Shown here: one piece after another, positions 1-64,000 of the stretch
How the letters are laid out: the number at the start of each line of letters is the position of its first letter
Numbering within the stretch: position 1 is the first letter of the stretch
Sequence record: PQ390715.1
Direction: 5' to 3' (one strand)
DNA: 64,000 nucleotides
Notes under the pieces: model-generated
Seen by the model: the letters and a program-made list of their open reading frames with translations, nothing else
Told to the model about the DNA's origin: nothing
Databases searched by the model: none
Position numbers and translations under genes: made by a program

Positions 1-83
1 TACTCCAAACTATTGACGGGAGAACTATTCCCCCGCTCGATGTAAAACATTATACATTACTGGTTAGTACTGTCAAATAGTTT

Positions 84-341
84 TTATGAAATATCTTCGA
101 TGTAGTCGGCCCATTTCATTTTTTCAGTACTGTCAACGGCGACCGGATTATTTGGATCAAACCATTCACCATTACCGCAGTACATACCGACAGCTACGGT
201 TTTATAGCCATCCTGGGCCGTACTCCACGACATTGCACGATAGATATGGCCTTTAACTGGTTGCAGTACTGGTAACGTTTTATGGTCTTCTACGTAGGCC
301 ATAGCTTGAGGATTTACCCGATATTGTGTGAACTGTTCCAT
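84..341 (-). CDS. Hypothetical early protein
   Basis: 85-aa ORF with RBS; promoter-like element at ~375-396. Confidence 0.7.
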   Translation of the reverse strand: MEQFTQYRVNPQAMAYVEDHKTLPVLQPVKGHIYRAMSWSTAQDGYKTVAVGMYCGNGEWFDPNNPVAVDSTEKMKWADYIEDIS

Positions 342-417
342 TATGTTTCCCCTTGTAGTTAGTAAAGTTATTACATCAGTACTATCAAGCTATGTCAATA
401 GTACTGAAATAAAACTT

Positions 418-642
418 TTAGATTAGATTATTGATGCCGTTGATGGTAGACTCGCTTTCTTCTTTCTCCCATTGGCGGTAGTACTTCCATGCTTCATGAT
501 ATGTGGCGATTAGTTCATCTTTTTGATCCTGAGTACATGCCAGTACTGAATCACGGTAAGAGGTGTTATAGATAGAATCGAATGATTTCTTCTCTTCTGC
601 CAGGGTAGCTACTTCCCGCATCAGTTCATCAAAGTTAGCCAT
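418..642 (-). CDS. Hypothetical early protein
   Basis: Own promoter, leader hairpin and AGGAG RBS. Confidence 0.8.
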   Translation of the reverse strand: MANFDELMREVATLAEEKKSFDSIYNTSYRDSVLACTQDQKDELIATYHEAWKYYRQWEKEESESTINGINNLI

Positions 643-709
643 TTTATTACTCCTTTTAGTGGGGGAGGATATCTCCCCCTATGCAAAACATTATACTTTG
701 TTTTAGTTA

Positions 710-973
710 TTATGCAAGTACTTTTTTCATATAAAGATTATATTCTACACCGCCGTAACCTTCTAAGATGATATGTTTTGCGTTATCACGTTTGCACATA
801 GTGAAACCGTTGTTGATGTGTTCTGCATTTTCCAGGGCTACATCACCGATTGCAGCACATACAGCACTTACAACGGTATTCCGCAAAGTACTGGTATCAT
901 TAGCGGTCATAGTAGTTTGCAGTACTACGTTGTCGTATACGTGTGCATTGATAGTGATTTCGATAGTGTTCAT
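710..973 (-). CDS. Hypothetical early protein
   Basis: Own promoter, leader hairpin and GGAG RBS. Confidence 0.8.
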   Translation of the reverse strand: MNTIEITINAHVYDNVVLQTTMTANDTSTLRNTVVSAVCAAIGDVALENAEHINNGFTMCKRDNAKHIILEGYGGVEYNLYMKKVLA

Positions 974-1059
974 GGTGTATCTCCCGGACTGGCGGGAGAA
1001 CTATTCCCCCGCTCTATGTAAAACATTATACGTTAATCTAACTACAATGCAAGTACTTT

Positions 1060-1251
1060 TTAAATTTTATTTCCGATATAGTCCGGTCTATTCTTTTCGG
1101 TCATACGCTTTGCTAATGTTTGCATATGGCTTATTGCGTTTAATGTGTCTTCCTCCAGGGATGAATCAACATAATCAGGATCATTCTTCACCTTGCAATG
1201 GTTATGATAGCGTAGTACTGCCAGTACTTTTTTAACTTCTTCAACTGTCAT
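1060..1251 (-). CDS. Hypothetical protein
   Basis: ATGA-type overlap with the upstream ORF. Confidence 0.7.
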   Translation of the reverse strand: MTVEEVKKVLAVLRYHNHCKVKNDPDYVDSSLEEDTLNAISHMQTLAKRMTEKNRPDYIGNKI

Positions 1252-1520
1252 AATAAGTATTCCACTTCGTTAGCTTTCAGGTTAGTATCAATCATCAGTG
1301 GATTTTTGTAGTTCACAAAACGATTAGTTTTCTCGATAGCGAATCCCATATAATCCAGCTTACTTACAGTACATTCATTCTTAAAAACTTCTTTCGCTGC
1401 ATTGATGGCTGATTCAATTGATAACCGACCATCTAAGTTAATGTTTCCAAATGATCCACCAGCAGAAGTAGGATTACCGTTCATATCTTTAATGATCATA
1501 GTAGCGGAGTAGCTGGACAT
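1248..1520 (-). CDS. Hypothetical early protein
   Basis: Own promoter, leader hairpin and AAGGA RBS. Confidence 0.8.
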   Translation of the reverse strand: MSSYSATMIIKDMNGNPTSAGGSFGNINLDGRLSIESAINAAKEVFKNECTVSKLDYMGFAIEKTNRFVNYKNPLMIDTNLKANEVEYLL

Positions 1521-1604
1521 AATTTTGTTTCCTTTTAGTATCGGGGAGAACTATTCTCCCCTTGATGTAAACTATTATACAGTACTAAGATACTTTGTCA
1601 ATAC

Positions 1605-10343: not shown

Positions 10344-10655
10344 TTTTTGTTTCCTCTTAGTTGTCTTGATAAAATCTATTATGCCAGTACTATCAATCTA
10401 TGTCAATAGTACTGTGATAATAATTTTACTTACTTTTTGCTTTCTTTACAGCTTCCACCTGGTCGGCCCACTCTTTACCCCATACTTGAGCATTATAGTG
10501 ATACTGACAAAGAGCAACGCCCCGTTTCAAACCAGTAATAGATTTTTTACCACATTGACAAGTTTTCATATTAGTTTCCTCATTATCAGGGAGAACCATT
10601 TCTCCCCTTGATGTAATGTATTATACTTTATCTGATTTACTTTGCAAGTACTTTT

Positions 10656-12436: not shown

Positions 12437-12520
12437 TTGATTATCCTTAGTTACCAGGGGGAACCGCTCCCCCTTGCGATGTAAAATATTATACAGTACT
12501 AAAAACTAATTGCAAGTACT

Positions 12521-16509: not shown

Positions 16510-16601
16510 AGTACTATTATTCAGTACTATTATTCAGTACTATCATTCAGTACTGCAACCATCCAGGGGAACTATCTTTCTATATAGGGGAACTATCTTT
16601 C
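16510..16601. repeat. 4 x 13-bp AGTACTATYATTC tandem repeat plus 2 x GGGGAACTATCTTTC
   Basis: AGTACT at 16510, 16523, 16536, 16549; direct repeats at 16566 and 16587. Confidence 0.9.
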
Positions 16602-18270: not shown

Positions 18271-18281
18271 GGGTTTAGCCT

Positions 18282-18366: not shown

Positions 18367-18383
18367 TGTCTCTATGTGTTTAA

Positions 18384-45600: not shown

Positions 45601-45608
45601 ATTTTTAA

Positions 45609-46642: not shown

Positions 46643-46719
46643 GGTAGTTCCTCGATTGTAGGGATGAGAAGTTCATCCCCCTTGATAAGCATTATACAGT
46701 ACTGAATGTGTTTGTCAAC

Positions 46720-47354: not shown

Positions 47355-47363
47355 ATATGTCTC

Positions 47364-48399
47364 CTATCGATTCGGCATATTCTTTCGTAGTCGCAAGAGA
47401 AATTCAACCACTGACCATGTTGTAATGAAGGCTATATAAGTTGCAAGGAATCCAGTAAGAATAAATGCAACCAGCGTACTACCATTTGGGGAATCAGTTT
47501 TAATGCCGATGACACCATCGGCTACAGTGAAACATGTAGCCATTAATGTGTAACCTACGTACAACACAAAGAAAAACTCATTCTCCATTGAAGGATAGAA
47601 ACGGTTAAACACTTTATAAAATTTAAAGTACAGTAGGATTATACCAACAAAGGCATAGAATGTAAACAGTGTTGTTATAATATATGAGATTAGGTTCAAA
47701 TTATACATATCAACGCTCCGGTAGATTATCACGTAATGTTTTAATTCGATGATACATTTTCATACCAATATTACCAAAGATACCATATCCAAGTACTAAA
47801 ATGTATGCAATAAGCATAGTAATAATTACTATAGTACCAAAACTATAATGTACACTACTGATACCCATTGTAGTTTCAACGATTATTTGAGAAACTGAAA
47901 GAATCAAAAGTACAACTACAATTGGATGATTTGGGTACATTCGGTTGAACAACGTTTTGTACTTAAAGAAGCACAGTACTCCACCGAATAAGAAGTAAAC
48001 AATGTAAATGCAAGCAACAGCATAGGCAAACATGTTAGTGTAATAAATCATTACAAATCCTTACTTTTCAGGGATATTAGAACGCCATATATCAATGCGA
48101 TGAACTAGTCCAAAGAACAACCATACTGGAACGGCAGCTATCATAACAACAAATGAAAACCCAGTCAAGACCGATACCAGATTTAATTCATCAGTACTAT
48201 ACCCACATATCAGTACTTCTAATATTCCCCACGTACATGCACAAAACATCAAGAATGAAATTGGGGCATCATAGTAGATACGTTCATATAAAGTAGTGTA
48301 TCGGAAGAATGCAATAATGTAGCAAAACATATAATACACCCAAACCAAAGATACTACATAAAATGATACTTTGTTTATTAATTCAAAATATTGTTCCAT
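47364..48399 (-). CDS. Three more ~113-aa membrane paralogues: 47364-47708, 47710-48051, 48061-48399
   Basis: Y..LF.R.YP motif, three TM segments, R.N(M/L/I)PE(R/K) C-terminus. Confidence 0.8.
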
Positions 48400-48401
48400 T
48401 T

Positions 48402-48683
48402 TTACCCCAATATATATTCAGAGAGTAATGTATTAGCTTCATCTTTGTTCTTAAGGTAATACATGTAATATAGATTCGGTTCACCATCTTTAGCACTCAA
48501 ATCGAAGTACTTTAAACTATGTACTTTCATAGTAAAAACAAATAATGACTTAAAACCAATCTCACCGTACTTAACAAATAGTTCATCCAAATGAATGTAA
48601 CTTTTTGATTTGGATAATTCTTTAACGTCTGCATCAATTTCAGATAAAAGATGCTTACCTATTAAGTTTTCAAATGAACGCAT
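48402..48683 (-). CDS. Hypothetical protein
   Basis: Co-oriented ORF. Confidence 0.65.
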   Translation of the reverse strand: MRSFENLIGKHLLSEIDADVKELSKSKSYIHLDELFVKYGEIGFKSLFVFTMKVHSLKYFDLSAKDGEPNLYYMYYLKNKDEANTLLSEYILG

Positions 48684-48687
48684 GATT

Positions 48688-49101
48688 TTATCCTTTTACA
48701 CAATTTGACATAATGTAAACACGTTTAATAAAAGAACTTTCATACACGTACTTCAACTTACCATTCTCACGTAAGCGGTGGAAAACATCACCTTTGTTAG
48801 TACTCCATGTGGAACCAGTACTGACATCTACATTAGCCATTGACCCACTGGTTACATTAATACCATACTTAAAACTAAAAGTTTCTCCGTCTTCAACTAA
48901 TGTCACAGGCGTGCTACGTTCATATTCAAATACAAGTTTAGAACCAATCATCTCATATGATTTCAATTTACACTTCATTACACCCATTTCATCTTGAGTG
49001 GGTAGATTTCTTTCAAATATATCAGAAACTTCGTTTGCAGAAGCAAATGAACTCATGGTCATTAATACAATACCAGTTACAATTAAAATAATATTTTTCA
49101 T
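48688..49101 (-). CDS. Secreted protein, paralogue of 49870..50289
   Basis: Signal peptide; shared PT..E.GV..C, FSF.Y and G.LKYVYES. Confidence 0.8.
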   Translation of the reverse strand: MKNIILIVTGIVLMTMSSFASANEVSDIFERNLPTQDEMGVMKCKLKSYEMIGSKLVFEYERSTPVTLVEDGETFSFKYGINVTSGSMANVDVSTGSTWSTNKGDVFHRLRENGKLKYVYESSFIKRVYIMSNCVKG

Positions 49102-49158
49102 GATAGGTTTATCTCTTTGTTTACGGTTTATTAAGAATACACCAGAACATCAGTTCTG

Positions 49159-49800
49159 TCAATAAAAAACTGGGTCTTCTTCAGTAATTGGTATTTCTCT
49201 ACGCACATCACACGAAAGAGGATCAGTAATGAATACATTCCCATCTTTATCCATCATCACATTACTTGAATGAATGTCTGGTACAAAACGCCCGTGAAAC
49301 TCTTTCATGATGTTAGCAGCGACCGTCGCAATAGCAATCTCTTCAGAATTTCCACGCATATCATTCACTGAAGTAGCGTACTGACCAGCATGTGCATAAG
49401 AATATAAATCTCCAATTTTAGTACTAACAAAGTCATCATAATTATTTTTTTGTTTAATTATAGGATAGTACTTGTCCATCTCATACCATCCAAAGTTTCC
49501 TTGTTCGTTGGCACTGTAGATCACTGGAAGAAACTTGGTTCCTGCGTTTTCAATGCAGTACTTTGCATAAGCACGAAAACCATCCCAGCGTGAAGTGGTT
49601 ACTTTAAATGCACGCCCAGGATAGTTTTTATGTTCAACTACTACAGAGTACATCCCCATACCAAGCAAAGTAAGTCCAGCAGCTTTAACTTGTGGAAAGA
49701 TTACGCGTTCAGCATAAGGAATATCAAACTCCATCGCACAACGAGTTTTTGATGGACGCAAAATGTCAATTAAAGTTTTGAATATTTCTTGCTTAGTCAT
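49159..49800 (-). CDS. T7 gp0.7-like Ser/Thr protein kinase
   Basis: GLTLLGMGMYS...H...PGRAFKV...DG..AY..YC and PDIHSSNVM...ITDP match the T7 0.7 kinase pattern. Confidence 0.85.
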   Translation of the reverse strand: MTKQEIFKTLIDILRPSKTRCAMEFDIPYAERVIFPQVKAAGLTLLGMGMYSVVVEHKNYPGRAFKVTTSRWDGFRAYAKYCIENAGTKFLPVIYSANEQGNFGWYEMDKYYPIIKQKNNYDDFVSTKIGDLYSYAHAGQYATSVNDMRGNSEEIAIATVAANIMKEFHGRFVPDIHSSNVMMDKDGNVFITDPLSCDVRREIPITEEDPVFY

Positions 49801-49869
49801 TACTTTATCCTCTGTAGTTAATACCAACATCATAACAAAAAAGGCTGACCGAAGTCAACCCTTTTATTA

Positions 49870-50289
49870 TCATTTACAGTTTTCTATAACTATTGCACGT
49901 TTTAGTATTTTACTTTCATAAACATACTTAAGATGACCTTCTTCACGAATACGATTGAACACATATCCTAGTTTATCTTTTAGTACTGAAGCGGTATCAA
50001 TGTCAAGATTAACTTCAACCCCTCCTGTTAATTTAACTTTATATGTAAAGCTAAAAGCATCACCAGATTCAACCAATGGGACTACTTGTTCATACGTATT
50101 CAACATAACTCGTTCATCATTAACTAAATTATATATTACTATATCACAAGTTTTTACCCCAATTTCCTCTAATGTAGGAGCATTATCTACTATAACATCT
50201 TTTACTGTATTTGCAACCTGTTTAGCATCTGCTGCATATACATTAAAACTAAAAAGTACTAAAATAATACTTAAAAAAATCTTTTTCAT
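49870..50289 (-). CDS. Secreted protein, paralogue of 48688..49101
   Basis: Signal peptide MKKIFLSIILVLFSFNVYA. Confidence 0.8.
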   Translation of the reverse strand: MKKIFLSIILVLFSFNVYAADAKQVANTVKDVIVDNAPTLEEIGVKTCDIVIYNLVNDERVMLNTYEQVVPLVESGDAFSFTYKVKLTGGVEVNLDIDTASVLKDKLGYVFNRIREEGHLKYVYESKILKRAIVIENCK

Positions 50290-50298
50290 TATATATCC

Positions 50299-50884
50299 TT
50301 ATTTTATTTTACACGTCATATCGGGTTGTGCTTGTTTATTATTTTTAAACGGATTAGGTTTTTTATCTTTCTTTTTATCTTTTAAAGGTTTTTTGTCTTC
50401 TTTTTTATCTTTATCTTTGTCTTTTTTATTTTTATCAGGTTCAGAGGGAGTATTACATTGTGCTGGGGGTTGATTAGTTGGAGTACAGCTATTGTCTGAT
50501 GGGAGTATTACTTCTTTACAATTGTAAAATAGTAAACTTTTATTTGTGGTTAAATTATGAAAACGATAGTTACGTTCATTATTATAATAAATTGTTTTAG
50601 TACTTTCAATGTCATTACACATTGCTACTGAATCACCGGAACTCTTTTTCTATTCCCATTACATCAGTCTTACGCTCAGATAGTATACCTGAAGTATATG
50701 AATCTTTGTTGTCAAACGCATTAAATCCAATAGTTCTGTCGGTGTCGTGTATTATTCCTTTTGTGTATGAGGTAGTATAGAACTCCCCATTTCTGAAATC
50801 CTGCCTTGCTACGGAGCAATGATAATCTGCACCATAAGCAGTACTGGAAAATAATACAATTCCAAATATAATATATTTTTTCAT
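50299..50884 (-). pseudogene. Secreted protein with K/D-rich tail, split by a +1 frameshift at ~50640-50650
   Basis: MKKYIIFGIVLFSSTAYG signal; removing one A from GAAAAAGAG joins the two ORFs (EKSSGDSVAMCND). Confidence 0.6.
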
Positions 50885-50955
50885 TGTAATCCCTCTTCTT
50901 AATTCCTCTTTTGTATTTACAAAAAAAGGCTGACCGAAGTCAACCTTTTGTTTTA

Positions 50956-52509
50956 TCATTTACCGTATTTGCTCATGATGTCCTTTTCCCAATGAGTTAC
51001 GTTACCGTTATCGTAATCTTTAAAGGAATTATCAAGAGTAGTTAATGCATATTCGTATGCTTCAGGTGATTCAATGTCAACATCATCAGCACCATTTACT
51101 AAATCAGTCCATGCTTTTTGTAGTTTACGAGCATTTTTACCAACATTACTTTTAATCCAACTAATGTTTTTGTTGATACTCTTATTATCAGCACCAGCTT
51201 TTTTACCAATATCGGATATCCACATCATTAGCTTTTGGAGTTCATGAATGGAGTTGTCGTTCATTTCACGATCTTTAGCCAATTCTGCTTCCATGCCATC
51301 AGTATCAGTACCATCTTTAGAACCTACATCAATTCCATGTTTAGCTAATAGTTTACCAAGTTCAAAGAATGCTGCCTCAGCAGGGAAGTCATAACCTTTG
51401 TCTTTGTAGTTGTTCCATGCACTATCAAACTCATCTACAAATCGGTTGGCATAATCTGGATTGTCCACGAGAGCTTTGTACACTGCCATTGCATGTTCAA
51501 ATCCTTCTTTGTCAGAACCAAACTCTCCCATTTCTGGACGATGAATGTAACCATCCATATCAACAGTATCAGGTAAATCATCATGAGATGTTTCAGCATC
51601 TTTCTGGTCAACTGCACCTTCTTCATCATCACGCATCAGATAACCATCTCGTGTAACCTTCTCACCATGATCAGCTTCATACTTTTTCATAGTATTGAAT
51701 GCAGCATCCATTGCAGTTACAAAACGACTCTTTTCACCTTGTACATAAGATTTAAGTGCATCGTTAACTGCATCAGATACTAATTTAATCTTATCGTCTT
51801 TGCCTTCCAGACGGTTTTCTAACTTAGCTAGTACATTCTTAACTTGTTGAGCATTAGCACGGTCTTCTTTACCAATACTATCAAATGTTTTAAGTACGCT
51901 TTCAAGACTTACTTCCTCTTGTGCAGGCACATCACCTTGTTGCGTACCTTCAAGTGCACGCATTATAGTACTGAATACTTCAGTTGGTTCAGTACTGGTA
52001 TTTCCACTCATTGCATCAAGTACAGCTTGTGCTTTGACTTTTAATTCTTCTTTAGGTACAGATTGCAATTCTTTCACAATACCTTGGATAAGTTGTGGTT
52101 TATTAGCAAAAATCTTACCTAACTTATCAGACAGTTCTTTGACAGGGTTAACCGCCTTTGGTGCTTCTTGTTTTGGTTCTTCTTTCGCAGGAGCAGACTT
52201 TTCTTTTTCTTCACGTTCCATATCAGCTAGACGTTGTTTTTGTGTAGCATTAAGAAGTCCCAATGAATTAACATAACGTAGCTTTTCTAGCTCAGTCATG
52301 TTCTCAGTACTCTTAACTTCACCTGCTTCTGCGTTTGCTTTACCAGCTAGACCAGTTCCTTGATTACGTGACCCACGTGAACCTTGACCTGCTTGATAAC
52401 TATTTGGACGGCGGTTGCGTTCACTCCATTTATCAGAGTGACCAGCCATGTTACCACCATTTTTATCAGTAAAATTACTTGGCATTTGATTTCTCTCCAT
52501 AGATTTCAT
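50956..52509 (-). CDS. Large acidic late protein, probable virion/internal protein
   Basis: TATAAATA immediately upstream; N-terminal part paralogous to 52755..53138. Confidence 0.7.
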   Translation of the reverse strand: MKSMERNQMPSNFTDKNGGNMAGHSDKWSERNRRPNSYQAGQGSRGSRNQGTGLAGKANAEAGEVKSTENMTELEKLRYVNSLGLLNATQKQRLADMEREEKEKSAPAKEEPKQEAPKAVNPVKELSDKLGKIFANKPQLIQGIVKELQSVPKEELKVKAQAVLDAMSGNTSTEPTEVFSTIMRALEGTQQGDVPAQEEVSLESVLKTFDSIGKEDRANAQQVKNVLAKLENRLEGKDDKIKLVSDAVNDALKSYVQGEKSRFVTAMDAAFNTMKKYEADHGEKVTRDGYLMRDDEEGAVDQKDAETSHDDLPDTVDMDGYIHRPEMGEFGSDKEGFEHAMAVYKALVDNPDYANRFVDEFDSAWNNYKDKGYDFPAEAAFFELGKLLAKHGIDVGSKDGTDTDGMEAELAKDREMNDNSIHELQKLMMWISDIGKKAGADNKSINKNISWIKSNVGKNARKLQKAWTDLVNGADDVDIESPEAYEYALTTLDNSFKDYDNGNVTHWEKDIMSKYGK

Positions 52510-52526
52510 TTTTTTCTCTATGTCTA

Positions 52527-52534
52527 TATTTATA
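52527..52534 (-). promoter_or_regulatory. T4-type late promoter
   Basis: Perfect TATAAATA 18 nt upstream of the start. Confidence 0.75.
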
Positions 52535-52754
52535 GTATAAAGAAAAGGCTGACCGAAGTCAACCTTATTTTGTTACTTAGATTGTTCTTGTGCAGGTGGA
52601 TTTACTTTTTGATCCACTACATAGAATACACCACCAACCAGTACTGCGGCGATGAGTGCAGCAACTACAAATTTTAAACCTTGCATATATGATACCTCAG
52701 TTATATTGAGAAGTTATGATACAACAAAGGGCTGACCTTAGTCAACCCTTTTTA

Positions 52755-53138
52755 TTACTTCTTGAACTTATGTTTTTCACTTTCGATTGCATTCACGATT
52801 TCATCATGAATTTTACGAAGATTGTGAGTTTTCTTTAGAGATTCATGTAATGCACGGAATGCAGAGTGTACAGTTGCTTTAAAGTGCTCTTTAGGAGTTA
52901 CTTTAAGTTTCTCGATAATATCACGTACATAGATTGGGTGATCCTCAAACACACGATTAAGCTCATGACCTAGTGATTCTAGGCTAAATGCTTTTTCACG
53001 GGATGGACGATCATGTGCAAGACTTTGGTCTGGTTTTAGAAGACCTAGTGAATCTAGATACTTGTGCTTATGTGCATTGTCTAGACCAGAAATATCAACA
53101 TCATGTGATGGATCTTTCTTATTCCATTTATCAACCAT
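52755..53138 (-). CDS. Late protein, short paralogue of the 517-aa protein
   Basis: DKW, (K/R)Y..SLGLL and (V/T)PKE..K motifs shared. Confidence 0.7.
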   Translation of the reverse strand: MVDKWNKKDPSHDVDISGLDNAHKHKYLDSLGLLKPDQSLAHDRPSREKAFSLESLGHELNRVFEDHPIYVRDIIEKLKVTPKEHFKATVHSAFRALHESLKKTHNLRKIHDEIVNAIESEKHKFKK

Positions 53139-53174
53139 TTTTATAACTCCTATAAGAGATAAATTTTACTATAA

Positions 53175-53182
53175 TATTTATA
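53175..53182 (-). promoter_or_regulatory. T4-type late promoter
   Basis: Perfect TATAAATA. Confidence 0.75.
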
Positions 53183-53253
53183 GTTCCGTTGTCATTTATA
53201 TCGAATGACATAAAACATTATATCATAATAAGAATGGTTGTCCCAAAGTTAAA

Positions 53254-56175
53254 TTAGTACTGATCAAGTTCAGATGTAAAAATGAATGCATCCATGTCTT
53301 CCAACGTAAGTTTTAAGTCTGGTACATACTTAAGAATAACGCACTCTGGCTTCTTAATAGCAGCTTGATAAGCAGCAATGGCAAGGGATTCCAATTGCTG
53401 TGCTGTATAATTTTTACGTTCTGCATTAAAAACTTTGTTTTTGATATCACCACCTGGGAGTTTTTCAAACTCACGCATAACTGCGGTAAGAACATCGTCA
53501 GCAGTGTTACTATATACCCATTGGGGTAATTGCATTACATTATAAATCACACCACTATCATCCATCAAAGAGATCCATTTGTACCCATCACTAGCACTGA
53601 ACAAACGCCCTTTTAGTACTGTGTTATTAGTTAAATTTACAAATGCAAAAATATCTTGTTCGTTAAGTTCAATACTATTAACATTTACCCAACTCATTAC
53701 GATTCCCCATTCATAAATCACGAACAATATTCATTAAACACAATTTAGGTTTTATAGCATTCAACACCCATATGCATTCTTTGTAAGTAGCTATTATATC
53801 ATCTAAATGCTCAGTTACAATGCTTTCTTGAAAATATTCTTCATCATTGAGCTTTGCTAATTTAGTAACATCACACGTAGGCACTATAGGTCTGGATTGT
53901 ACACCCATTCCATTATTGATATTAGTGAAATGTACAAAATGGTACTTCACAACACCTTTATCTAGATTTATTATACATGACAAATTTTCCAACTCAGTTA
54001 GTTTTTTATTACAAGTAACATTAATGAAACCAGCATTATAGGCTCTATAATCATCTACTGATATCTCAAAATCATTACGTTCAAATATAAGTGAAATGAG
54101 TTGGTCCAGTGGTTTGACATTCATATATTTTAATGAATTTACGTATGATACTTCAATCTTAGATGAAATTATCTTTTTACTAAGTGCAGTTAAATCTTTG
54201 TTAGATTTAACTGTTAAAACAATAGGTTTAAACCTAGAACTTTTGTTCTTTTTTGATACTTTAAAACGACCTTTACGATTCATAATTTCCTCAATTAATA
54301 ATTTCACATTTAACGTGTGGTTTATATAGCATAATTAACCCATTTTTAAGTACAATGATTGTTGCTCTGTTAGTAATCGAAACGTTTTTAATTATACTTT
54401 TTTTATATGTTTCAACATATTTCTCTTCATAATTTATACATTTAACATATTCTTTTTGTTTAGCACTTACAACAGTACTGAATAATATCAGTACAAGTAC
54501 TATATATTTCATTACTATACCTTATAAACAAAAAGGAATTCATTTAAGAATTCCTATTTTACAATCATTTATCTAACATACCATTGTGCAAACGTTCATA
54601 TACTTCAGTTCGACGCAAATTAACAATATCTTCTGCGTATTTTAATGTAAATGCCCATGCTTTTGGATGTACGTTAAGCTTCATACGAATTCGATTTTTC
54701 ATCAACTCTCCACTTAAACGAATAAATTCGTGTACACCACGACTACCGTATTCAGTAATTAAATCATTAATGTACATATCACGAAGAGTTTCATCTGCAC
54801 ATTCTTTAACCATTTCTACGTCAGCGACGATGCTTTCATTAACTGAAGTACTGATCATTTTTAATTTACCTTATTTAAATTCGACTGTAATTTTATCACC
54901 TTCAACTACGAACTTACAGTTGTAGCGACGTGCCATATCCATGTACATATGCTCAGAGTACCAAGGAACATCAATAATCGGATGCTCTGCATATTGTAGA
55001 ACTTCACGGTCGCCCACTGTAGTAATGATGAAAGGAATGTTCATCTCTCGTAAAAACAGTTCAGCACCAGGAGAACGATTAATAAATTCAGTATCATTAC
55101 GTAAAGTAAATCCATTATATTGTAATTTAAGCTTCATATGTTATCCTCTATTCAATACCATTCTTTAAAACCATTAAGTTCGGCTACGTGAGTGATTATA
55201 ACACATATAACATTCAGGTCAAGTATAATTTGATCATAATTTAATTTTATACGATCATCATTATATGCTCTAAAAACTACATCGTAATCAAAGAAATTTG
55301 CGTTTTCATCATTCATTGAAACGATTCGGTATCTACGTCTTCCATCTGTATTGAATATAGTTAAACACTGTTGAAACTTTCTCATTAACTGTTTAGATAG
55401 GATATTATAATATTCAATATCTTTTTGTGAATTACGTGGGTCATCAGGAAGATAGAATGAAACAAATTTCTTTAATTCTATTTGAGTTTTATCCATATAT
55501 TACCTCATGTGTTTCTCTTTTACTTTGTCGGAACTCATCCTTTGCTTCCTTAACTGACATGATACGAACTAATTTAGCACTACCGCAATAGTACTGAACC
55601 TGATTACGACCAATGTCTACATGGTGGTCTGGAACTTCATATACAGATATAGCAAACCCAGCACGATGCAATTTACCCAAGTCCATAGTGAAGAATCTGA
55701 ACAAATCTTTCAAACTTTGACAGCCAAATACCCATCCACTTTTGATTGAATAGATCCCATCCTCAGTTGGTTCAGGTTGGAATTGAGAAGGTGTAGTCAT
55801 AAGCAAACGGTCAAATCCATTTTTAGTACTGTATCTGGTTGAATACCGTGCAAACGGACCTACAGTTCGTGCAGGATCTAAGTTAGGTTCAATGTAACTA
55901 AATTTAAGTTCAAAACGATATACATACATAATTAAAATCCTCTAATTTATTAAGAGAATTATAACAAAAAAGGCTGACCGAAGTCAACCTTTGTTTTGAA
56001 GTTCTTGAACTAATTGTCGTACTTCGTTAATATTTTTACACTGCTTTACAGTGAAGTAATCATACTTACGACCATAGGTTCTTGGGTCATCACCTTCCAT
56101 ATACTGCTGCACATCAAAGATTTGTAAGTAGGGATGCTGCATAACACGAATATTATCACTTTGATAAATCAACAT
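53254..56175 (-). CDS. Run of hypothetical genes: 53254-53697, 53711-54283, 54291-54512, 54565-54858, 54871-55137, 55152-55496, 55489-55929, 55984-56175
   Basis: Co-oriented, tightly packed, RBS present; no function recognised. Confidence 0.7.
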
Positions 56176-56179
56176 AATA

Positions 56180-57986
56180 TCAATCCTTATATTTACACAA
56201 GCCACCAAAACTAGTTTCTTTAGCACCACGACGCATCATAACTAATTTAGCATATTGTGTGCCATTACTATCTTCATATACATCTACTTCAATAAACGCT
56301 AAGAAGTTAGGGTCTGTGTCGTTAGAAAACTCAGTGAAGCTAATGTCGCCTACTGTATGCTCTTTAACAAACGTATATGATTGTCCATCAATATATACAA
56401 TATCTCGATCGTCACTATCACCTTGATAGATATGTTTAATATTACCATCGGTACAAACTAAACCTTCCAATGGTTCAGCATATGACAATCCACACATTAA
56501 CATACATACAAAAAATAAAATAATTTTCATGATTATTTTCCTCCAACGTTAAGTGATTTCTTGTACTGATATTCTTTATAAGTACTATACCATATATCAC
56601 CAACGTAAATCAAGTACCACGTAGCAGGATAAAGAGCCAATCCAGTACTGATGTATACGAACTTTTGGTCAAGGACATCAAATACATACAGAAGGAAAGT
56701 TACTCCCATAATGCAAGAACAAATTAACCACAAGTTATAAGCAATCGAATCGCAAGCAAAAATAGAATCAAGCTTAGAAATTAGGACATATTTGTTTGTT
56801 AAAATGAAATGAATTACTGCAACTAAACAATATCCTGCCATAAAAATAGAAATTAAAAAAGACAGAATAATTGGAATATTCAACAACAAAAGTAAAATAG
56901 TGTTTACCATTTTTTTAAGTCCTATATTTCACAGTGTAAGTTCAATTTATCTATATCTAGGTCACGGCGTACCGATGAGTCCAAGTAAATTACTATATAG
57001 ATATCACCATTACCAGTTCTTGGGTCTACAATTAATATTACGTTTGCTAATGTACCAGAATCATCTCTATAAGTCGAGATTTTTTTATTACCGATAATAC
57101 TTTCTACTTTAAAACGATAAATCACACCATCAACAACTATATTTTTACCATTTCTAGGGTCGTTAGTCAATACATGCCACGTTCCCTTAGTACTACGACA
57201 ATATGTTTCTGCTGCTGCACCATAACTAAAACATGAAAATAATGCACACACAAGTGCTATTAATTTTATATAACTCTTCATAACAAACCTCTAACGAGAA
57301 ATACTTCTGTACTATATATATGTACAGAAGTATTTAATACTATAGAGATATTTTCACTGTTACATCTTATTCGTGAACTTGAATTTGATAATATCAATCC
57401 AAATTTTAACATTTCCTGCAAATAGTGCTTTGATTAGCCACATAATTGCAACAAAGTTCTCAACTAAATCCAAAGTTTTAACTACTGCACCGAGTGGGAA
57501 GATAAAACTCAAAACCCATACAATTACTGAAACCACAACGACTGTATAGAAAATACGCACAATCGGCGAATCAAGCATAAACAACTCAGAGAACTCTTTT
57601 TTATCATTATCATCAGTAATAAAGCATTCGTAAACCAGAAGCCAAATCAGAATTAAAGACGGAATTGAAATTAGTACTGATAGCATATTTTTTACCTCAA
57701 GTTTAAGTGTTAAGTTTCAGACTACAGGAACCATTATACAGTACTACGAACGTTTGTCAACATTTGTTTCTTCAATAAGCATAAGATAACTTAACACGAA
57801 GAGTAATACCGAAATAATATCAATAACTGTAAAGCTCACTGGAATGATAATAGACACCAGTACTAATGCCACGTTTAGCAAGAATACAGTAGTGAGATCT
57901 ACCATCGTTCGTCTAGTGGCTAATGCCACTAGTGTAGGATAGAACATAAACAATAGTGCAACAACAAAACTTAGTACTAGATACAT
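56180..57986 (-). CDS. Envelope-protein cluster: secreted 56180-56530 and 56922-57281; membrane 56533-56910, 57360-57686, 57744-57986
   Basis: Signal peptides or TM segments; the two secreted proteins share C......H......IV.(I/V)DG..Y.F. Confidence 0.7.
57299..57335. terminator. 14-bp-stem bidirectional hairpin
   Basis: AAATACTTCTGTAC-N9-GTACAGAAGTATTT. Confidence 0.75.
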
Positions 57987-60407
57987 TTCTTTTTCACCTT
58001 AATAAAATTATAACACAAAACCACATCAACATCTGGCTCATCACACAAGTACTCAAAACGTTCTTTACTTCGTTTAGTACCGATATACTCACCATTCTTA
58101 TGCCAACGCCATCCACCATCCTTTGGTTGTTCAGACTTCAGTACTGGGTGATAGCACAAGACAATTTCTTCTGGACCTTCAATTAGGTTCTTGTACTTCT
58201 TCATAATCTGTTCAAGCGTATCTGCTACACCATAAGATGAATGCATAAGATAAGACTCAGGACGTGGACGTCCACTTGGTAGAATATCATCAGTACTATT
58301 AAAGATAGCACGGAAGTCTTCAGATGTGTATAGACTTCCATCTTCATGGATCATTGGGTATTCATCCACGACATCGTAATCAGTGAAGTGTTCAATTGCA
58401 TGTGCAGGTCGATAACCTGCAAGGATACCTGCATGTTTAGTCTGGACAATAGTCATAACAGATGTATTGTTGTTTACATTTGGATCATGAATTTCAGCCC
58501 AAAACGGATGATTTGGATCAAAAGTTGCATTTACCAATGTACACTCACCAATGTAGTCAAACATAGTTTCCTTGAAGTTTAAAGAAACTCCACGTAATGC
58601 CCAGTCAGGTGAAGTGATGAAATTAAGATTAACTAACATAAGTATCCTCAGATGCAATTTTTTTGATGTGGTTATTGTATCAAAGATGTATCGATTTGTA
58701 CAACATTTATTGTAACTATTTCGTACATATAGTCAGGTGCATTGAACTCAGCATACCACTCAATGATCTCACAAGCAGCATCAACTTGGTTGTTCGCATT
58801 AACACGTCTTGCATAGGTACTAGACATTTTATATCTACCATTTACATACACGTTATATACACCATGACACCACCACATCTTAGTCATTTATACTAGGCCA
58901 TACTTTGTATTGTAAGTTCTGGTATTGAAATTTACCAATTTCATTTTTCTTACGGAATGATTCATCTACTTGAATTTCCGCATCGTACTGACCATCAGCC
59001 TGTACAACGTACTTAAATTCTTCTACGTGTGAAAAACGTAGACCTTCACCTTCTGGTTTATAGACTTGTACTAAACCTTCAACTAGATATAAATTCATTT
59101 ATCATTCCTCATCACTTTCAGTTAGTATAATGCTATGTACAGTTTCCACATAGCGGTGTGTTTTGGGTGTGTTATACTTTGTAATTTCATCAAACAATTT
59201 AAACAGTGCATCTACTTCACTAAGAGCACGAATGAATACATCCATCTTGGTGACTACTCTGGAAAACCCGCGTATGTTATTAAATTCAGAGACGTGTTCA
59301 TACACAACATAGTATCTATTCATATATTAAAAAGTTCCATGAATTCATTGAATAAAGAAGTTCTAATGCACATAACAAATTCAAAATCAACATCTATGGT
59401 GTCAAGTAGTTTGAACAACTTTGGTACTAATGGATCATTCACCTCAAAGTTATGAATCAAACTTTGTTGAAACACATTTTCTTCAGTACTATAATCAATA
59501 ACAAAATATTCAGCAATACCAGGTGGTGTGTAAACATCATATAAAATATGGCGGTGATGATTTGTTTTAGAACTAGGGGAATATATAAGTTCTATTTCAT
59601 AAGATTTATCAGCACTGCGTGCGTAACAAACAATATCAGTACTCGTTATTTCTGAACCATCACTTCTCTCTGAAAAACAAACATCAGCATAGCGTTTTCC
59701 AGAGAGATTCAAAAGGTCATGAGTTGTTTTACCATAACAGAAATCAGTTTCAATGCGTATCACATCTTGATATTCAATTGGTCTTGTATCGCGGCGTTCA
59801 CGATTAAACACTAATTTCAACAACTCATTAATATCCATTATTTCGCCTCGATAACCTTAAGGTTAACAAAATCACCTTTTACTTTCATGCATTTGAATTC
59901 AGTGCGAGTTTCATCCCCACTATCGCGAGGCCAATGAGTGGCAGAGTAGCACTGGTCTGGTGTTTTATATACACCTTCACCAATAGTACGAGTGATTTCA
60001 CCATTGGTGAGAACTACTGCGAGATATAAAGTAAACATGATATTCGCCTTAGAATAATTTATTAATAATAATAGCACCCAACGCAAGAACTGCAATAATT
60101 ACAGATACCCACATTACTGCATTCACTGTACCAGTAAGTTCTTTATCAAACTCCCTGCACTTCTTGCGGTAATCTTCCCACTCTTTGTTATTCACACTGC
60201 CACTCCTAATAGGTCGGTAGCTTTCTTGAGTACTACGTCAATGGTTTCCAGTACTGCACCTTTGTGTTCAATTGATACAATATTATTATAAGTATCAAGG
60301 TCCAAGTACTCCATATATTCAGTTTTGAATACACGAACATCAGTACTAGTGATTTTAATATCACAACCTTTATCCCAAATAACCTGCATCATTTCATTGG
60401 TAGTCAT
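57977..60407 (-). CDS. Run of hypothetical genes: 57977-58564, 58672-58887, 58880-59098, 59102-59323, 59320-59838, 59838-60038, 60192-60407
   Basis: Co-oriented ORFs with RBS. Confidence 0.7.
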
Positions 60408-60682
60408 TATTCAACCTTATCATAAACAAGTTTGTGTGTGCTTAGTACTTTGTTGTGATGTCCAGGGCATTCATATACATACAATCGCTCCTGTCGTTTT
60501 TCCCAACCACCACAGATACGACCTGATTGTGTACATACCTCATACTCGTTAATAAAAGACTTACCTGTGAATGTACAATCCTGACGAACTAAGTCTTTTG
60601 CACTAAACCTGCCGTCATCATTACATGCTGTAAGAAACATTGTACAGAATACAACAAACACAGTCAATAGTTTTTTAATCAT
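60407..60682 (-). CDS. Lipoprotein
   Basis: Signal with LTAC lipobox; four further Cys. Confidence 0.75.
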   Translation of the reverse strand: MIKKLLTVFVVFCTMFLTACNDDGRFSAKDLVRQDCTFTGKSFINEYEVCTQSGRICGGWEKRQERLYVYECPGHHNKVLSTHKLVYDKVE

Positions 60683-61047
60683 TTAAGATCTCCCCAACGG
60701 CAACCCTTCATATGATTCAAATTCACCTCAACTATTTCATGTGTGTCAGTGCACAATATCGACAGTTTTTTTGTAAAATCACCTGGTGAACTTTCATATT
60801 TCACACAATAGCCCTCGATACGGAGAACCGAATGGGTCCATGATTCCCACTCAATCCAAATTTCATTTGGGTGATATACAATATTTTCGTTTAGCTTGTG
60901 ATATTCATCTAGTGGAAGCTGTGTAGTGATATCAACATATTTTACATTTCGAATGAGTTTTTCAAGCTGATATTTTGCATTAGCAAGATATTCTTCATCA
61001 TTCAAACGTTCTAAGATATTTGCTGCACGAGTTGTATCAAGACTCAT
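60679..61047 (-). CDS. Hypothetical protein
   Basis: Coupled ORF. Confidence 0.65.
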   Translation of the reverse strand: MSLDTTRAANILERLNDEEYLANAKYQLEKLIRNVKYVDITTQLPLDEYHKLNENIVYHPNEIWIEWESWTHSVLRIEGYCVKYESSPGDFTKKLSILCTDTHEIVEVNLNHMKGCRWGDLK

Positions 61048-61049
61048 TG

Positions 61050-61295
61050 TTATTCTCCATGAACCACTGATGTATTCATACGAATTTTCCCACTCGTATG
61101 CGACGTAGAAGTGTTTGCATTAGGACAGTACACAGTGTATAAAGTCGCACCAGCACCATCTTGTTGCATACGATAAATCTTACACCCTGCTTCTTTTAAT
61201 TCAGCAGGTAGAACAAAATCACTTGTACGTTCTTTGGTAGAAGCATCACATGCAGTGAGTAGAAATGCGACGAGTACTGCTACAATGTATTTCAT
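61050..61295 (-). CDS. Lipoprotein
   Basis: MKYIVAVLVAFLLTAC lipobox. Confidence 0.8.
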   Translation of the reverse strand: MKYIVAVLVAFLLTACDASTKERTSDFVLPAELKEAGCKIYRMQQDGAGATLYTVYCPNANTSTSHTSGKIRMNTSVVHGE

Positions 61296-61603
61296 TAACG
61301 AACCTCCACTTCTTGAGAAAGAGCATGAGTCAGTGCATTTGAATTCGAACCATTCATTTCACGCTGACATACAAACATAATGGCATCTTGTACTGAACCT
61401 GCGATTTCATACTCACGACCTTCTGGATCAGTTACCAGATGTTCAACGATACAACCACCTCTCAGTACAGAAGCACCAGTACTTACACTAATTTTGTAAC
61501 CTAAGAAATCAAACTGCATACATGCGTCAGTAGGTTTCATCCAATGACCGCTGTTTTGATTCAAATCGATGATTACAAAACCTTGAGTGTTAGTTTGAAA
61601 CAT
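61295..61603 (-). CDS. Hypothetical protein with a long structured 5' leader
   Basis: GAGGA RBS; promoter at 61698-61726. Confidence 0.7.
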   Translation of the reverse strand: MFQTNTQGFVIIDLNQNSGHWMKPTDACMQFDFLGYKISVSTGASVLRGGCIVEHLVTDPEGREYEIAGSVQDAIMFVCQREMNGSNSNALTHALSQEVEVR

Positions 61604-61722
61604 AGTTAATTCCTCATTTAATTTAAAAGGGCGGGAACGCAGTGACGAGTACGATTATGCTGTCTTTCCTTTCACTGCATTCCCTTTTATATAAAACATA
61701 ATACTGCTATTATTCAGTACTG

Positions 61723-62564
61723 TCAATCGATATAAGTACCTTTTTTAACATCACAGACTTCTTCCATCCAATGTGGATTTTCGTTTTTATCAGTGAAGAT
61801 TTGTTCTGCTTCTTCTTTTGTTTCAGCTAGGACAATACGATCCCCTTCATCCAAATCACGGATACGATACACTTTCAGTTCTTGTTTCTTCTCAAGGATA
61901 TTACACAGTTCACGTGCTTTTTCTTCATCGCACTTCCCTTCATTAGCATAAAACCAAATTGCTTTTTTAATAAGGTCACGTTCTTCTTTAGAAAAAGACA
62001 TAATATTTCCTATCATTTGTTAAAGTGGATTTCGTTTGATATAAACATTATACAGTACTGATATCTTATGTCAAGTATTAATCACTAAAAATCATCAGAT
62101 ACCCAAACCAACCCACACAGACGACTAAGCTAACAATACCAAAGACAATCTCTAAAGTCATGTTGTATCCTTAATCAACGATTTTATATTCACGATGACC
62201 ATAGAATCCAGCCTCAAGGATGCGATTACCATCAGCATCTTCCAAATCCCACCCACGGGATGTTTCGGCAATAATAGTCATGATGTGACCTCTTGGGAAA
62301 ATTCCACTCATGGTGGATACATCTTCAAGTAATTGAACTTTCTTACCAACATTGGAATTCGGTTTAAACATTTTATGGCCCTTATTCATTGATCACATCA
62401 AGTACTTTATCCAGCTTTTTACCAATGCTTTCCTTTGGTTTCTCACCATTCTGGAATACATTAGTACTGCAATACTCAGGACGCGTATTAGGAAACTTCT
62501 CGTTCATCCAGGAGTGACCGTAAACACCCAGCATGATGCCAACGATAAGAATGATAATTTGCAT
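61723..62564 (-). CDS. Hypothetical genes 61723-62001, 62171-62371, 62382-62564
   Basis: Co-oriented ORFs. Confidence 0.65.
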
Positions 62565-62579
62565 GATAATTTCCTCTGA

Positions 62580-63368
62580 TTAAATGTTAGTAGTATAGTA
62601 CTTGATTTCGTTTTGAATTGCAAGTTCTATTTGTTTATTGAAAAGAATTCCAAACTCTTTGATTGATTCACAATCGAATTCAATAGAAAAAGTATACTCT
62701 GGTATACGTACATTGTCAATACCCAAATACTCTTTTATGTAAATTTTAATGAGTTCACATAGTGCAGTACTAAGACATTGAATTTCAAAATGTTTTGCAC
62801 CTTTGTCAAAATACTTGAATGCATCAATATCACCTACAATAAAACTATTCTTTAATGTAGTGAATAGGTTCTCAGGAAACACGGTAATAGGTGACATTGA
62901 TTTAAGAATGTATGTATCTTTGGCATTCTTAATGTACTCAATGAAGCAGTAGTTAACGTCAGGCTCGATTGAACGATCCGCGTTATGATACCAGTGTTTA
63001 AACTCACTGTATTCAGCAAACTTATGCTGGCGTAATGCGTTACAATCTTCACACAGTGCAGTCATGTTCTCTTTATCATTACCGCCCTGAAGACAGTCAA
63101 GTACATTATGGTCTAACGTCATGCGTACAAGGCGTTTCCCTTTAAGTACATAAGGTCTGAATTTATAACGTTCTTTAGTACTGTGCTTATGTAAAGTGAA
63201 TACCACATTGGATTCACCACAACAATCACATTTAAAGCCATCACGTGACATTACATGAATGAGTTTTCGAGTATTTGGACCAAACTCTGATTTGGTAATG
63301 TTACCTACAATTTCTGATGGTTGGTAATATTTTGAATTCCGTCGAATCAGTTCATCTATAGTGCTCAT
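62580..63368 (-). CDS. HNH endonuclease-domain protein
   Basis: CDCCG...MTLDHNV....GGND.ENMTALCEDCN (zinc-binding HNH). Confidence 0.8.
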   Translation of the reverse strand: MSTIDELIRRNSKYYQPSEIVGNITKSEFGPNTRKLIHVMSRDGFKCDCCGESNVVFTLHKHSTKERYKFRPYVLKGKRLVRMTLDHNVLDCLQGGNDKENMTALCEDCNALRQHKFAEYSEFKHWYHNADRSIEPDVNYCFIEYIKNAKDTYILKSMSPITVFPENLFTTLKNSFIVGDIDAFKYFDKGAKHFEIQCLSTALCELIKIYIKEYLGIDNVRIPEYTFSIEFDCESIKEFGILFNKQIELAIQNEIKYYTTNI

Positions 63369-63369
63369 T

Positions 63370-63806
63370 TTACATTAATCCTTCTATGCTACAACCAATA
63401 AGTACTTTTTTCACTTCAATAACTCGTACCAAATAGAATCCATTTGAAAAGTTAAAACTATACATTTGTACTAAGGCATCTGCTTCAGATTTCGCACGGA
63501 TACATGATAGATAAATTTCACGTATATCACCATCCAACGATACTTGTTTCTCTGCACTGATGACAATAGAACGAATCTCAAAACGAACGCCATAACTCAT
63601 TGAGTTTGTCCTACAATAAGCTTTGTGTTAGTATTACTATTGTAACACCACATTTGTTCTTTATTAACTGTAATCCAAATATCTTTGTTTACTTGTTCGT
63701 ATGTACTATCACGTACTGCTATACATTGATTCATGGAATTCATTGGGGTTATTTGTACACCGGAATTAACAGAAAAAGCTATTACTAAAAAGATTACTGA
63801 ATTCAT
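63370..63806 (-). CDS. Hypothetical genes 63370-63600 and 63597-63806
   Basis: Downstream of a TTGACA-17-TAGAAT promoter at ~63875-63903. Confidence 0.65.
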
Positions 63807-64000
63807 TGGATATTCCTTAATGGTTAATCATCCATCTCTTCGAGATGTCTGTTCGCTTCTAATACTACGTATTCTACGCGAATGATTAATAACTGTCAAG
63901 GACTTTTAATATTGACGGGATTTGAGGAAGGGATTTTTCTTCCCCCCCACAAGGAGGGAAATTTGACGCTGATGGTATCAGAGCTATTGCATTGAAGATT

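Follow-up and report, generated by a model that had tools for sequence, protein, structure and literature searches.

Several kinds of short DNA words recur at many places in bacterial or phage genomes. HIP1 (GCGATCGC), found in cyanobacteria, is associated with methyltransferases acting on its core. Chi (GCTGGTGG) is asymmetric and orientation-dependent, is read on single-stranded DNA and regulates RecBCD. The stoperators of cluster A mycobacteriophages are asymmetric, protein-binding words of 13 bp that are oriented with transcription, occur in tens of copies and serve the prophage repressor. SlmA sites (GTRAGYRCTYAC) number about 50 in the Escherichia coli chromosome. Here we analyze a further word, the palindrome AGTACT, in a stretch of 64 kb (the window) of Escherichia phage SHEFM2K, identical to positions 62001-126000 of record PQ390715.1. 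SHEFM2K is a coliphage with a genome of 348,006 bp (34.1% GC) and is placed in Asteriusvirus, among the Rak2-like jumbo myoviruses. The analysis suggests that positive selection at the DNA level would have made AGTACT a signature of the Rak2-like jumbo phages that infect Enterobacterales.

Scale and form of the AGTACT excess

An earlier note on the window had described AGTACT as extremely over-represented, counting 16 copies by hand in the first 2 kb and estimating the GC content by eye at about 35%. The recount gives exactly 16 copies and the measured GC content is 35.3%; the observation is real and stronger than first noted. The window contains 288 copies, against 21.6 +/- 5.5 (maximum 36) in 100 dinucleotide-preserving shuffles, and the whole SHEFM2K genome 902 against 118 expected at zero order. 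AGTACT is the commonest hexamer both in the window and in the entire 348 kb genome, the next unrelated hexamer, TATAAT, being about 3x rarer, and the word CAGTACTG occurs 65 times in the window. The Markov-corrected k-mer scores that the same note had proposed as a check place the AGTACT family at the top for each k from 4 to 7, with maximal-order z values of 20 for GTAC, 17.6 for AGTAC, 12.5 for AGTACT and 5.6 for AGTACTG.

The site has the flank consensus H-AGTACT-D, with C favoured and G shunned at position -1 and the mirror image on the other side. C occupies position -1 at about 45% of sites and G at only 6-8%; these preferences are conserved throughout the clade of Rak2-like phages. They amount to a weak extended palindrome, ttCAGTACTGaa, with no signal farther out. 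Being a perfect palindrome flanked symmetrically, AGTACT, unlike Chi, implies a reader that is two-fold symmetric and acts on double-stranded DNA. Within the NGTACN family, AGTACT is enriched 7-9x, and GTAC and the AGTAC half-sites only mildly (about 1-3.6x, mostly 1.5-3), while CGTACG is always absent from the clade genomes and GGTACC is absent from all but RaK2. Any reader must therefore see the outer A·T pair.

Distribution in the clade and contrast to the host

The excess is shared by all 12 Rak2-like genomes examined (Table 1). They carry 850-1313 copies each, against 134-200 of TCATGA, the control word of the same composition, where the latter was counted; the seven clade genomes tested reach 7.2-8.9x the zero-order expectation. 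At this clade depth, identity is only 31-38% in a shared structural protein. The hosts of every enriched phage belong to the Enterobacterales. The distant relatives PA5oct, XacN1 and Atu_ph07 are all AGTACT-depleted, and so is T4. No mention of the motif came up in full-text searches on AGTACT and phages, on the genus and on the reference papers of the clade.

Table 1. Copies of AGTACT and of the control word TCATGA in Rak2-like phages and outgroups
Phage	Group	AGTACT	TCATGA
SHEFM2K	Rak2-like	902	138
121Q	Rak2-like	903	134
EJP2	Rak2-like	1312	159
K64-1	Rak2-like	940	141
RaK2	Rak2-like	937	142
Erwinia phage Hallingskeid	Rak2-like	1313	200
Serratia phage BF	Rak2-like	1072	152
Cronobacter phage GAP32	Rak2-like	1011	169
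Yersinia phage fHe-Yen9-04	Rak2-like	1008	137
Pectobacterium phage CBB	Rak2-like	1235	187
Salmonella phage Munch	Rak2-like	850	149
fEgEco12	Rak2-like	1115	
PA5oct	Outgroup	15	40
XacN1	Outgroup	0	127
Atu_ph07	Outgroup	25	82
T4	Outgroup	29	51

Phages generally avoid palindromic restriction sites, as the earlier note had stated, and these genomes do so emphatically. SHEFM2K lacks 22 of the 64 hexamer palindromes and contains no GCGC, of which about 289 are expected in 348 kb. GCGC is found 0 times in each of seven clade genomes (SHEFM2K, 121Q, fEgEco12, RaK2, GAP32, Munch and BF), and 16-27 of the 64 hexamer palindromes are wholly missing from each of them, all with at least 4 G/C (GGATCC, CTGCAG, CCATGG, GGTACC and CGTACG are examples). 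PA5oct displays neither AGTACT enrichment nor palindrome purging. Such purging elsewhere in the genome makes the AGTACT excess more striking, and the tolerance of a 900-copy palindrome where others are fully eliminated implies protection or benefit. As a side observation, the Klebsiella phage RaK2 (JQ513383.1) carries 49 GGTACC, 2.0x expectation, against 0 in the six other clade genomes tested; KpnI, which cuts GGTACC, originates from Klebsiella pneumoniae.

The host chromosome offers a strong contrast. E. coli K-12 has 400 AGTACT in 4.64 Mb (0.086/kb) against 1147 copies of the control word, so that a single phage genome holds 2.25 times the count of the whole chromosome. The phage density exceeds that of K-12 about 30-fold overall (2.6/kb) and about 76-fold in the direct terminal repeat (DTR; 6.6/kb). 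Rare in the host and dense in the phage, AGTACT is therefore an excellent word for telling phage from host DNA.

Independence from protein coding

Two controls retained coding properties, synonymous codons being shuffled within each gene in one and the order of codons being shuffled in the other. Genome-wide, coding DNA holds 741 sites, against 219 +/- 13 after synonymous and 129 +/- 11 after codon-order shuffling; the corresponding figures for the window are 189, 57.7 +/- 6.5 and 25.1 +/- 4.7. DNA-level selection independent of coding, as proposed in the earlier note, is thus upheld, the excess outlasting the codon- and amino-acid-controlled shuffling that the note had named as its refuting test. 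The sites inside open reading frames (ORFs) indeed stand in several reading contexts, since all three frames are used: 85 copies in the window read AGT ACT, 63 xAG TAC Txx and 41 xxA GTA CTx, and the genome-wide numbers are 370, 226 and 143, respectively. Density is higher in non-coding than in coding DNA, with 99 sites in the 11.5 kb of non-coding DNA of the window against 3.9 expected (25x). At the protein level, 50-59% of Ser-Thr dipeptides are encoded AGT-ACT in four genomes, against 15% predicted by codon usage, and Ser-Thr and Val-Leu dipeptides are themselves 1.4-1.7x over-represented; the AGTACT pressure distorts protein sequence as well as codon choice.

These results bear directly on the idea that the excess is a coding or compositional by-product of codon usage, amino-acid content, phage tRNA supply or the purging of other palindromes. 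AGT, ACT and GTA belong to the favoured codons, tRNA-Thr(UGU) and an AGY-reading tRNA-Ser (anticodon ACU in three genomes) are phage-encoded, and many other palindromes have been removed, all of which would go in that direction. However, the excess survives both shuffles by 20-40 standard deviations, it peaks in non-coding DNA and occupies every frame, PA5oct is depleted in AGTACT in spite of the same GC content and similar tRNAs, and the purging of GGTACC and CGTACG could yield only a few tens of sites. The shuffles effectively refute a by-product, whose probability we consider negligible.

The tRNA genes deserve a separate remark. Bacteria normally read AGY codons by a GCU anticodon. The tRNA-Ser anticodon is ACU, the exact cognate of AGU, in SHEFM2K (Table 2), 121Q and Munch, and GCU in fEgEco12, RaK2, GAP32 and BF; all seven of these surveyed genomes also carry tRNA-Thr(UGU). 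The ACU anticodon fits the heavy AGU/ACU usage imposed by the motif, though the tRNAs of PA5oct are similar.

Density along the window and the terminal repeat

The DTR of fEgEco12 has been determined experimentally and measures 20,993 bp (PMC13070987); its two copies are identical, as checked in the sequence. In that genome, AGTACT reaches 6.57/kb within the DTR and falls to 1.60/kb over the 10 kb that follow, the density of the remaining genome being 2.55/kb. The window aligns to fEgEco12 in reverse, its position 1 corresponding to fEgEco12 position 19286 and its position 17295 to 852. Window positions 1 to about 18150 therefore belong to the DTR, with the terminus near 18150. This segment carries small minus-strand genes of early type with sigma70-like promoters. 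In SHEFM2K, densities of 12.0/kb in non-coding and 4.6/kb in coding DNA of the DTR stand against 2.9/kb and 2.3/kb, respectively, in the remainder of the genome, so the DTR excess is seen within both compartments.

The 13-bp tandem repeat of sites to which the earlier note had drawn attention lies within 400 bp of non-coding DNA, at a distance of about 1.6 kb to the terminus (Table 2). Conserved site arrays were considered as nucleation points and rejected: arrays do occur, but their positions are not conserved in other genomes. Two long non-coding stretches beside the terminus, which hold this array, are also rich in short direct repeats (GAAAGATAGTTCCCC; units of the GGATGG/CTGGAAG/TAGACGGCTAAA type) and may represent signals for packaging or terminus generation, or an origin.

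Table 2. Coordinates of the features discussed (positions are those of the window unless the record is named)
Feature	Position	Strand	Remarks
Part of the DTR of the linear virion genome	1..18150		AGTACT 7.05/kb
Unique DNA adjoining the DTR	18151..24200		AGTACT 6.45/kb
Rest of the window, basal genome density	24201..64000		AGTACT 3.04/kb, ~9x chance; RCC1-like paralogs, middle/structural genes
Tandem array of four AGTACT at 13-bp spacing	16510..16554		Unit AGTACTGAATAAT on the minus strand
Register A example	1574..1586	minus	
Register A, all copies	1574, 3719, 4148, 5458, 7260, 7842, 8866, 12488, 13272, 15637, 17698, 46691, 57733, 62047	minus	
Register B example	10643..10652	minus	
Register B, all copies	713, 1048, 1905, 4627, 5752, 8301, 8889, 10643, 10962, 12511, 13295, 13960, 14762, 15321, 15999, 16459	minus	
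Promoter with both registers	12488..12520	minus	AGTACTTGCAATTAGTTTTTAGTACTGTATAAT; sites 20 bp apart
Recurring intergenic module	1884-2049, 4455-4769, 8227-8440, 14589-15014		Four copies
Two long non-coding stretches beside the terminus	16438-17718		~400 and ~670 bp
ParE-like protein	2962-3216	minus	84 aa; PF24732, E = 6e-11
DTR protein rejected as reader	3279-3683		pLDDT 71, pTM 0.35
First array of small paralogs	18384-23187		
Second array of small paralogs	PQ390715.1 54224-60142		3-4 AGTACT per 5 kb
RCC1-like tandem paralogs	23291-37853	plus	~13 genes, PHROG 4219
Chi sites	1456, 2863, 4663, 5581, 7043, 11032, 17494, 47188	minus	
Chi sites	17506, 23507	plus	
PF05869 methyltransferase gene	PQ390715.1 20223-20744	minus	Outside the window
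tRNA-Ser(ACU)	PQ390715.1 ~140,547-140,638	minus	Outside the window

Conservation, turnover and spacing of the sites

A comparison of SHEFM2K with fEgEco12, which are 85% identical at the nucleotide level, shows 76.7% of AGTACT hexamers conserved intact. Words of the same composition average 43.9%, and AGTACT beats all 162 control words (63.6% for the best of them). Site turnover is balanced in this pair, 193 sites being found in one genome only and 248 only in the other, and intragenic sites are constrained as strongly as the others. Only pairwise conservation was used, gains and losses polarised with fEgEco12 as outgroup being unreliable at 15% divergence, where the gains of control words far exceed their losses.

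At deep divergence (median protein identity of 55-60%), only 16-28% of sites coincide. Conserved Ser-Thr dipeptides are written AGT-ACT in 65-77% of cases in each genome, and those written so in both genomes number 39 against 38.0 expected in one comparison (p = 0.6) and 32 against 32.4 in the other (p = 1), the expectation being the product of the marginals under independence. Saturation is alike, at 49-62%, across gene age classes from outgroup-shared to genus-only genes.

The sites are also spaced more evenly than random. The coefficient of variation of the gaps is 0.80 in the terminal repeat, against 0.99 +/- 0.08 for random placement, and 0.87 against 1.00 +/- 0.04 in the unique region at 100-340 kb. 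The longest gaps, 509 bp in the terminal repeat and 1976 bp in the unique region, compare with 827 +/- 176 and 3015 +/- 523 bp, respectively. Short-term constraint, free turnover at depth, saturation and even spacing together argue for a pressure on density and coverage and not on particular loci.

Promoter registers

A minority of sites holds a fixed place in promoters. In register A (TTGACA-N9-11-AGTACT-G-TATAAT), the site stops 1 nt ahead of the -10 box. In register B (AAAAGTACTTGCA), it lies about 21-22 nt upstream of TATAAT and its last T is the first T of the TTGCA -35 box. The promoter-spacer and -35-upstream contexts pointed out earlier are both real, the register A word AGTACTnTATAAT being present in 14 copies and the register B word AGTACTTGCA in 16 copies on the minus strand of the window. 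The two registers often occur together, 20-23 bp apart, and among short spacings in the window those of 20-24 bp are the most frequent; both registers recur in 121Q, RaK2 and GAP32. They cover about 5% of the copies, that is about 40-50 of some 900 sites per genome, and most copies have no fixed promoter register. Apart from this, the metagene profile is flat except for mild peaks ahead of start codons and within 40 nt downstream of stop codons. The latter peak adjoins terminator stems and does not lie inside them; the placing of sites in terminators by the earlier note is correct only in a loose sense.

A recurring intergenic module was also observed (Table 2), with the order TTGACTnCGGTCAG...TATTATAT...ATTC-AGTACT-GAAAACTATTTTTAAAA-AGTACT-TGCA...TATAAT. 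With its stacked promoter-like elements, it looks like a set of duplicated regulatory cassettes.

Search for a writer or reader of the site

A search for a methyltransferase elsewhere in the genome, as had been suggested, gave a predicted minimal adenine methyltransferase of the Dam family (PF05869) that defines the clade, being encoded by all 11 clade genomes searched and by none of the 4 outgroups. The enzyme is about 173-192 aa long and, in SHEFM2K, carries an NPPY motif; the stop of its gene and the start of the following one share 4 nt. The order of the 12-gene block around this gene is strictly syntenic in RaK2, GAP32, Munch and BF. On this circumstantial evidence, the PF05869 enzyme is the best candidate partner of AGTACT. 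No solved structural relative was found for it. Its nearest homologs outside the clade are 38-43% identical, and the Dams of lambdoid and Stx phages about 31%. These out-of-clade homologs were dropped as independent support for the link, their genomes being poor in AGTACT.

Conventional methyltransferases were rejected as a cause, the C5 (PF00145), N4/N6 (PF01555) and D12 (PF02086) families being patchy or absent across the clade; the search with the MT-A70 family gave no matches in the control genomes. RaK2 DNA displays some restriction resistance of the methylation type, at sites other than AGTACT (PMC3622015).

Phyletic profiling returned 112 clade-specific core proteins. Domains were searched in 53 proteins, of which 8, among them the five conserved DTR proteins, have their genes in the window and 45 outside it, with matches to PNK, RNA ligase, IF3, lysozymes, TelA, a helicase, an HNH nuclease that is probably an EndoVII-like resolvase, a ParE-like domain and the Dam methyltransferase. 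A DTR protein considered as a winged-helix reader had weak language-model look-alikes and was dropped after its AlphaFold model, of mediocre quality (Table 2), gave no fold match.

Explanations of the excess

We estimate at roughly one in two the probability that AGTACT represents a selected density of a double-stranded DNA site recognized by a clade-specific factor. Its value would reside in density and even coverage of the genome and not in single copies. A site rare in the host and abundant in the phage is suited to discrimination between the two DNAs by a symmetric factor, and a symmetric, probably dimeric, clade-specific factor may distinguish phage from host DNA in this way. The self mark could consist of N6-methyladenine written by the orphan Dam-family methyltransferase, or of direct binding by some protein; starting at entry, it would shield the phage DNA or draw some factor to it. 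Candidate uses are nuclease protection, the recruitment of replication, transcription or packaging machinery, and timing through the methylation state. About 5% of the sites would have been co-opted beside the -35 and -10 boxes of early promoters.

That the Dam-family enzyme writes the mark is a more tentative proposal. It can be extended, with equal caution, to a density-coded self mark in which methylated AGTACT would be read by a symmetric phage or virion protein. The phage could thereby tell its own DNA, unmodified and purged of palindromes, from the host chromosome, for instance sparing it from a phage-directed nuclease or directing packaging, replication or transcription to it. Such a mark would have its greatest strength in the terminal repeat found at both virion DNA ends and would be a virus-encoded counterpart of Chi or HIP1. 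A protein is inferred to read or write the site; it may be the methyltransferase, and the mark may serve such uses. The functions listed in the earlier note (methyl mark, nucleoid organizer, packaging or ejection aid, regulator) could not be separated here, save for a pure promoter or regulator role, which covers about 5% of sites.

A number of points weigh against selection for a site with a phage-encoded partner. The co-distribution of enzyme and AGTACT is a single evolutionary event, common to all 112 clade-specific core proteins, and characterized members of the PF05869 family methylate GATC. Three unrelated phages with the nearest homologs are AGTACT-depleted, with 4, 0 and 4 copies against 13.2, 11.0 and 15.0 expected. 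Methylation alone explains the tolerance of sites, not selection for extra copies, and no DNA-reader domain other than the methyltransferase was found among the 53 proteins searched. A sequence-specific conversion bias would likewise give low loss rates and saturation. Finally, Asteriusvirus DNA gives normal digests with ten ordinary restriction enzymes, ScaI, RsaI and TatI not being among those reported (PMC13070987); this rules out global base replacement and is silent on AGTACT.

Among the alternatives, AGTACT could be an operator or promoter element, either the site of a global regulator or a part of early promoters, with intragenic copies as spill-over or roadblocks. The two sigma70-like registers with their conservation in three other phages, the peak of density in the early-gene terminal repeat and the paired sites 20-23 bp apart would then be explained, but 82% of sites lie within ORFs, distributed evenly over the length of genes, late and structural ones included, and under equal constraint, and many of the promoter copies are paralogous cassettes. 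As 95% of copies lie outside promoters, a role in regulation alone is disfavoured, and we consider it improbable. A mutational or repair drive, in which a repair or gene-conversion bias comparable to very-short-patch repair turns near-cognate words into AGTACT without any benefit, appears somewhat less probable still. It would accommodate a uniform and saturating pressure regardless of locus, frame or gene age, the slow loss of existing sites and the mild enrichment of the half-sites; it predicts neither the 2-4x DTR excess in both coding and non-coding DNA nor the under-dispersed spacing, heterogeneous constraint being expected to cluster sites. A Vsr-like version was rejected, as no Vsr-type nuclease (PF03852) was found in five clade genomes, whereas control genomes matched, and the words one mismatch away from AGTACT are not depleted (0.54-2.11x, most at or above 1.0). 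We know of no enzyme that creates a 6-bp palindrome in this manner.

The partner could instead belong to the host, an Enterobacterales protein such as a nucleoid-occlusion factor resembling SlmA reading the motif and being exploited or titrated by the phage. All enriched phages infect Enterobacterales and the Pseudomonas relative PA5oct does not have the trait, a pre-existing host protein could act at entry, ahead of phage gene expression, and the same genomes have adopted the host Chi sequence. The SlmA site GTGAGTACTCAC shares the central hexamer, and SlmA requires G1, T2, A4 and G5 together with a purine at position 3 (PMC3020112). In the phage sites, however, position 3 is occupied by a pyrimidine in about 68% of cases and by G in 8%, and position 1 by G in 16%, with 0 copies of GTGAGTACTCAC and 2 matches to GTnAGnnCTnAC in 348 kb. 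SlmA was rejected as the reader on these grounds, no other host protein reading AGTACT could be named, and host range is confounded with phage phylogeny. No candidate host factor survives, and we rate this the least probable of the three alternatives considered here.

Neighbouring genes and Chi sites

Other features of this DNA were noted in passing (Table 2). The ParE-like toxin domain in the terminal repeat belongs to a protein conserved in all clade genomes tested and absent from PA5oct and XacN1. Two arrays of packed paralogous genes of 60-80 aa, with almost no intergenic DNA, correspond to PHROG 11711 (about 20 genes) and PHROG 4148 (about 25 genes); AGTACT is unusually low in the second array. 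The tandem paralogs on the plus strand are annotated as 'regulator of chromosome condensation' (RCC1-like beta-propeller).

Chi itself is enriched 8-17x in all seven clade genomes tested, which hold 18-48 copies where 1.5-2.9 are expected; PA5oct shows no such enrichment. Each terminal repeat of fEgEco12, 21 kb long, carries 12 Chi, 10 of which are co-oriented; according to the orientation rule of RecBCD, copies so oriented should act on enzyme that enters at the right end.

Significance and comparison with known systems

A conserved 8-fold excess of one palindrome that reshapes codons and dipeptides is a clear sign of a DNA-level function. If AGTACT is a self mark, it would answer how large T4-related phages without modified bases tell their own DNA from that of the host. 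The word would give a simple experimental handle, through ScaI, oligonucleotide pull-downs and synonymous recoding, and E. coli is a tractable host in which the role of an iterated palindrome could be put to the test. It could also serve as a practical signature for the clade in metagenomes, and it is a design constraint for the engineering of these therapeutic-candidate phages.

Restriction-modification offers one parallel, AGTACT being the target of the type II enzyme ScaI and an orphan adenine methyltransferase being present clade-wide; yet restriction logic predicts avoidance or neutrality, never 8-fold enrichment, and no cognate endonuclease for AGTACT was found. A viral methyltransferase targeting this very word has been inferred for mollivirus (PMC7253447). 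The SlmA sites of E. coli, read by a helix-turn-helix dimer (PMC3020112), are likewise palindromic and have the identical central hexamer, but the phage sites lack the required outer bases, disfavour a purine at position 3 and number about 900 per 348 kb. Stoperators share with AGTACT the scattering of many copies of one word, also within genes; the phages considered here are lytic and carry about 900 palindromic copies.

Chi is similar in logic, as an over-represented short word with genome-wide coverage that benefits from density and acts as a self cue under nuclease attack. AGTACT shows the over-representation and the coverage but, as a palindrome with symmetric flanks, none of the asymmetry or orientation bias, and no nuclease partner is known for it.

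The likeness to HIP1 drawn in the earlier note is apt, both being highly iterated palindromes across a clade. Both are massively repeated in genes in all frames and between genes, and both are maintained clade-wide at the DNA level. AGTACT shares with HIP1 a many-fold genome-wide excess, independence from coding and maintenance in a clade despite turnover of copies. It differs as a 6-bp, A/T-flanked word of a virus clade instead of a cellular phylum, by its coexistence with the complete purge of 16-27 other hexamer palindromes and its concentration in the terminal repeat, and by a roughly 30-fold contrast to the host genome that confers a discriminating power HIP1 does not need. HIP1 is the closest known phenomenon, of which AGTACT is a viral, 6-bp, host-contrasting variant in a palindrome-eliminating genome and, to our knowledge, would be the first viral counterpart.

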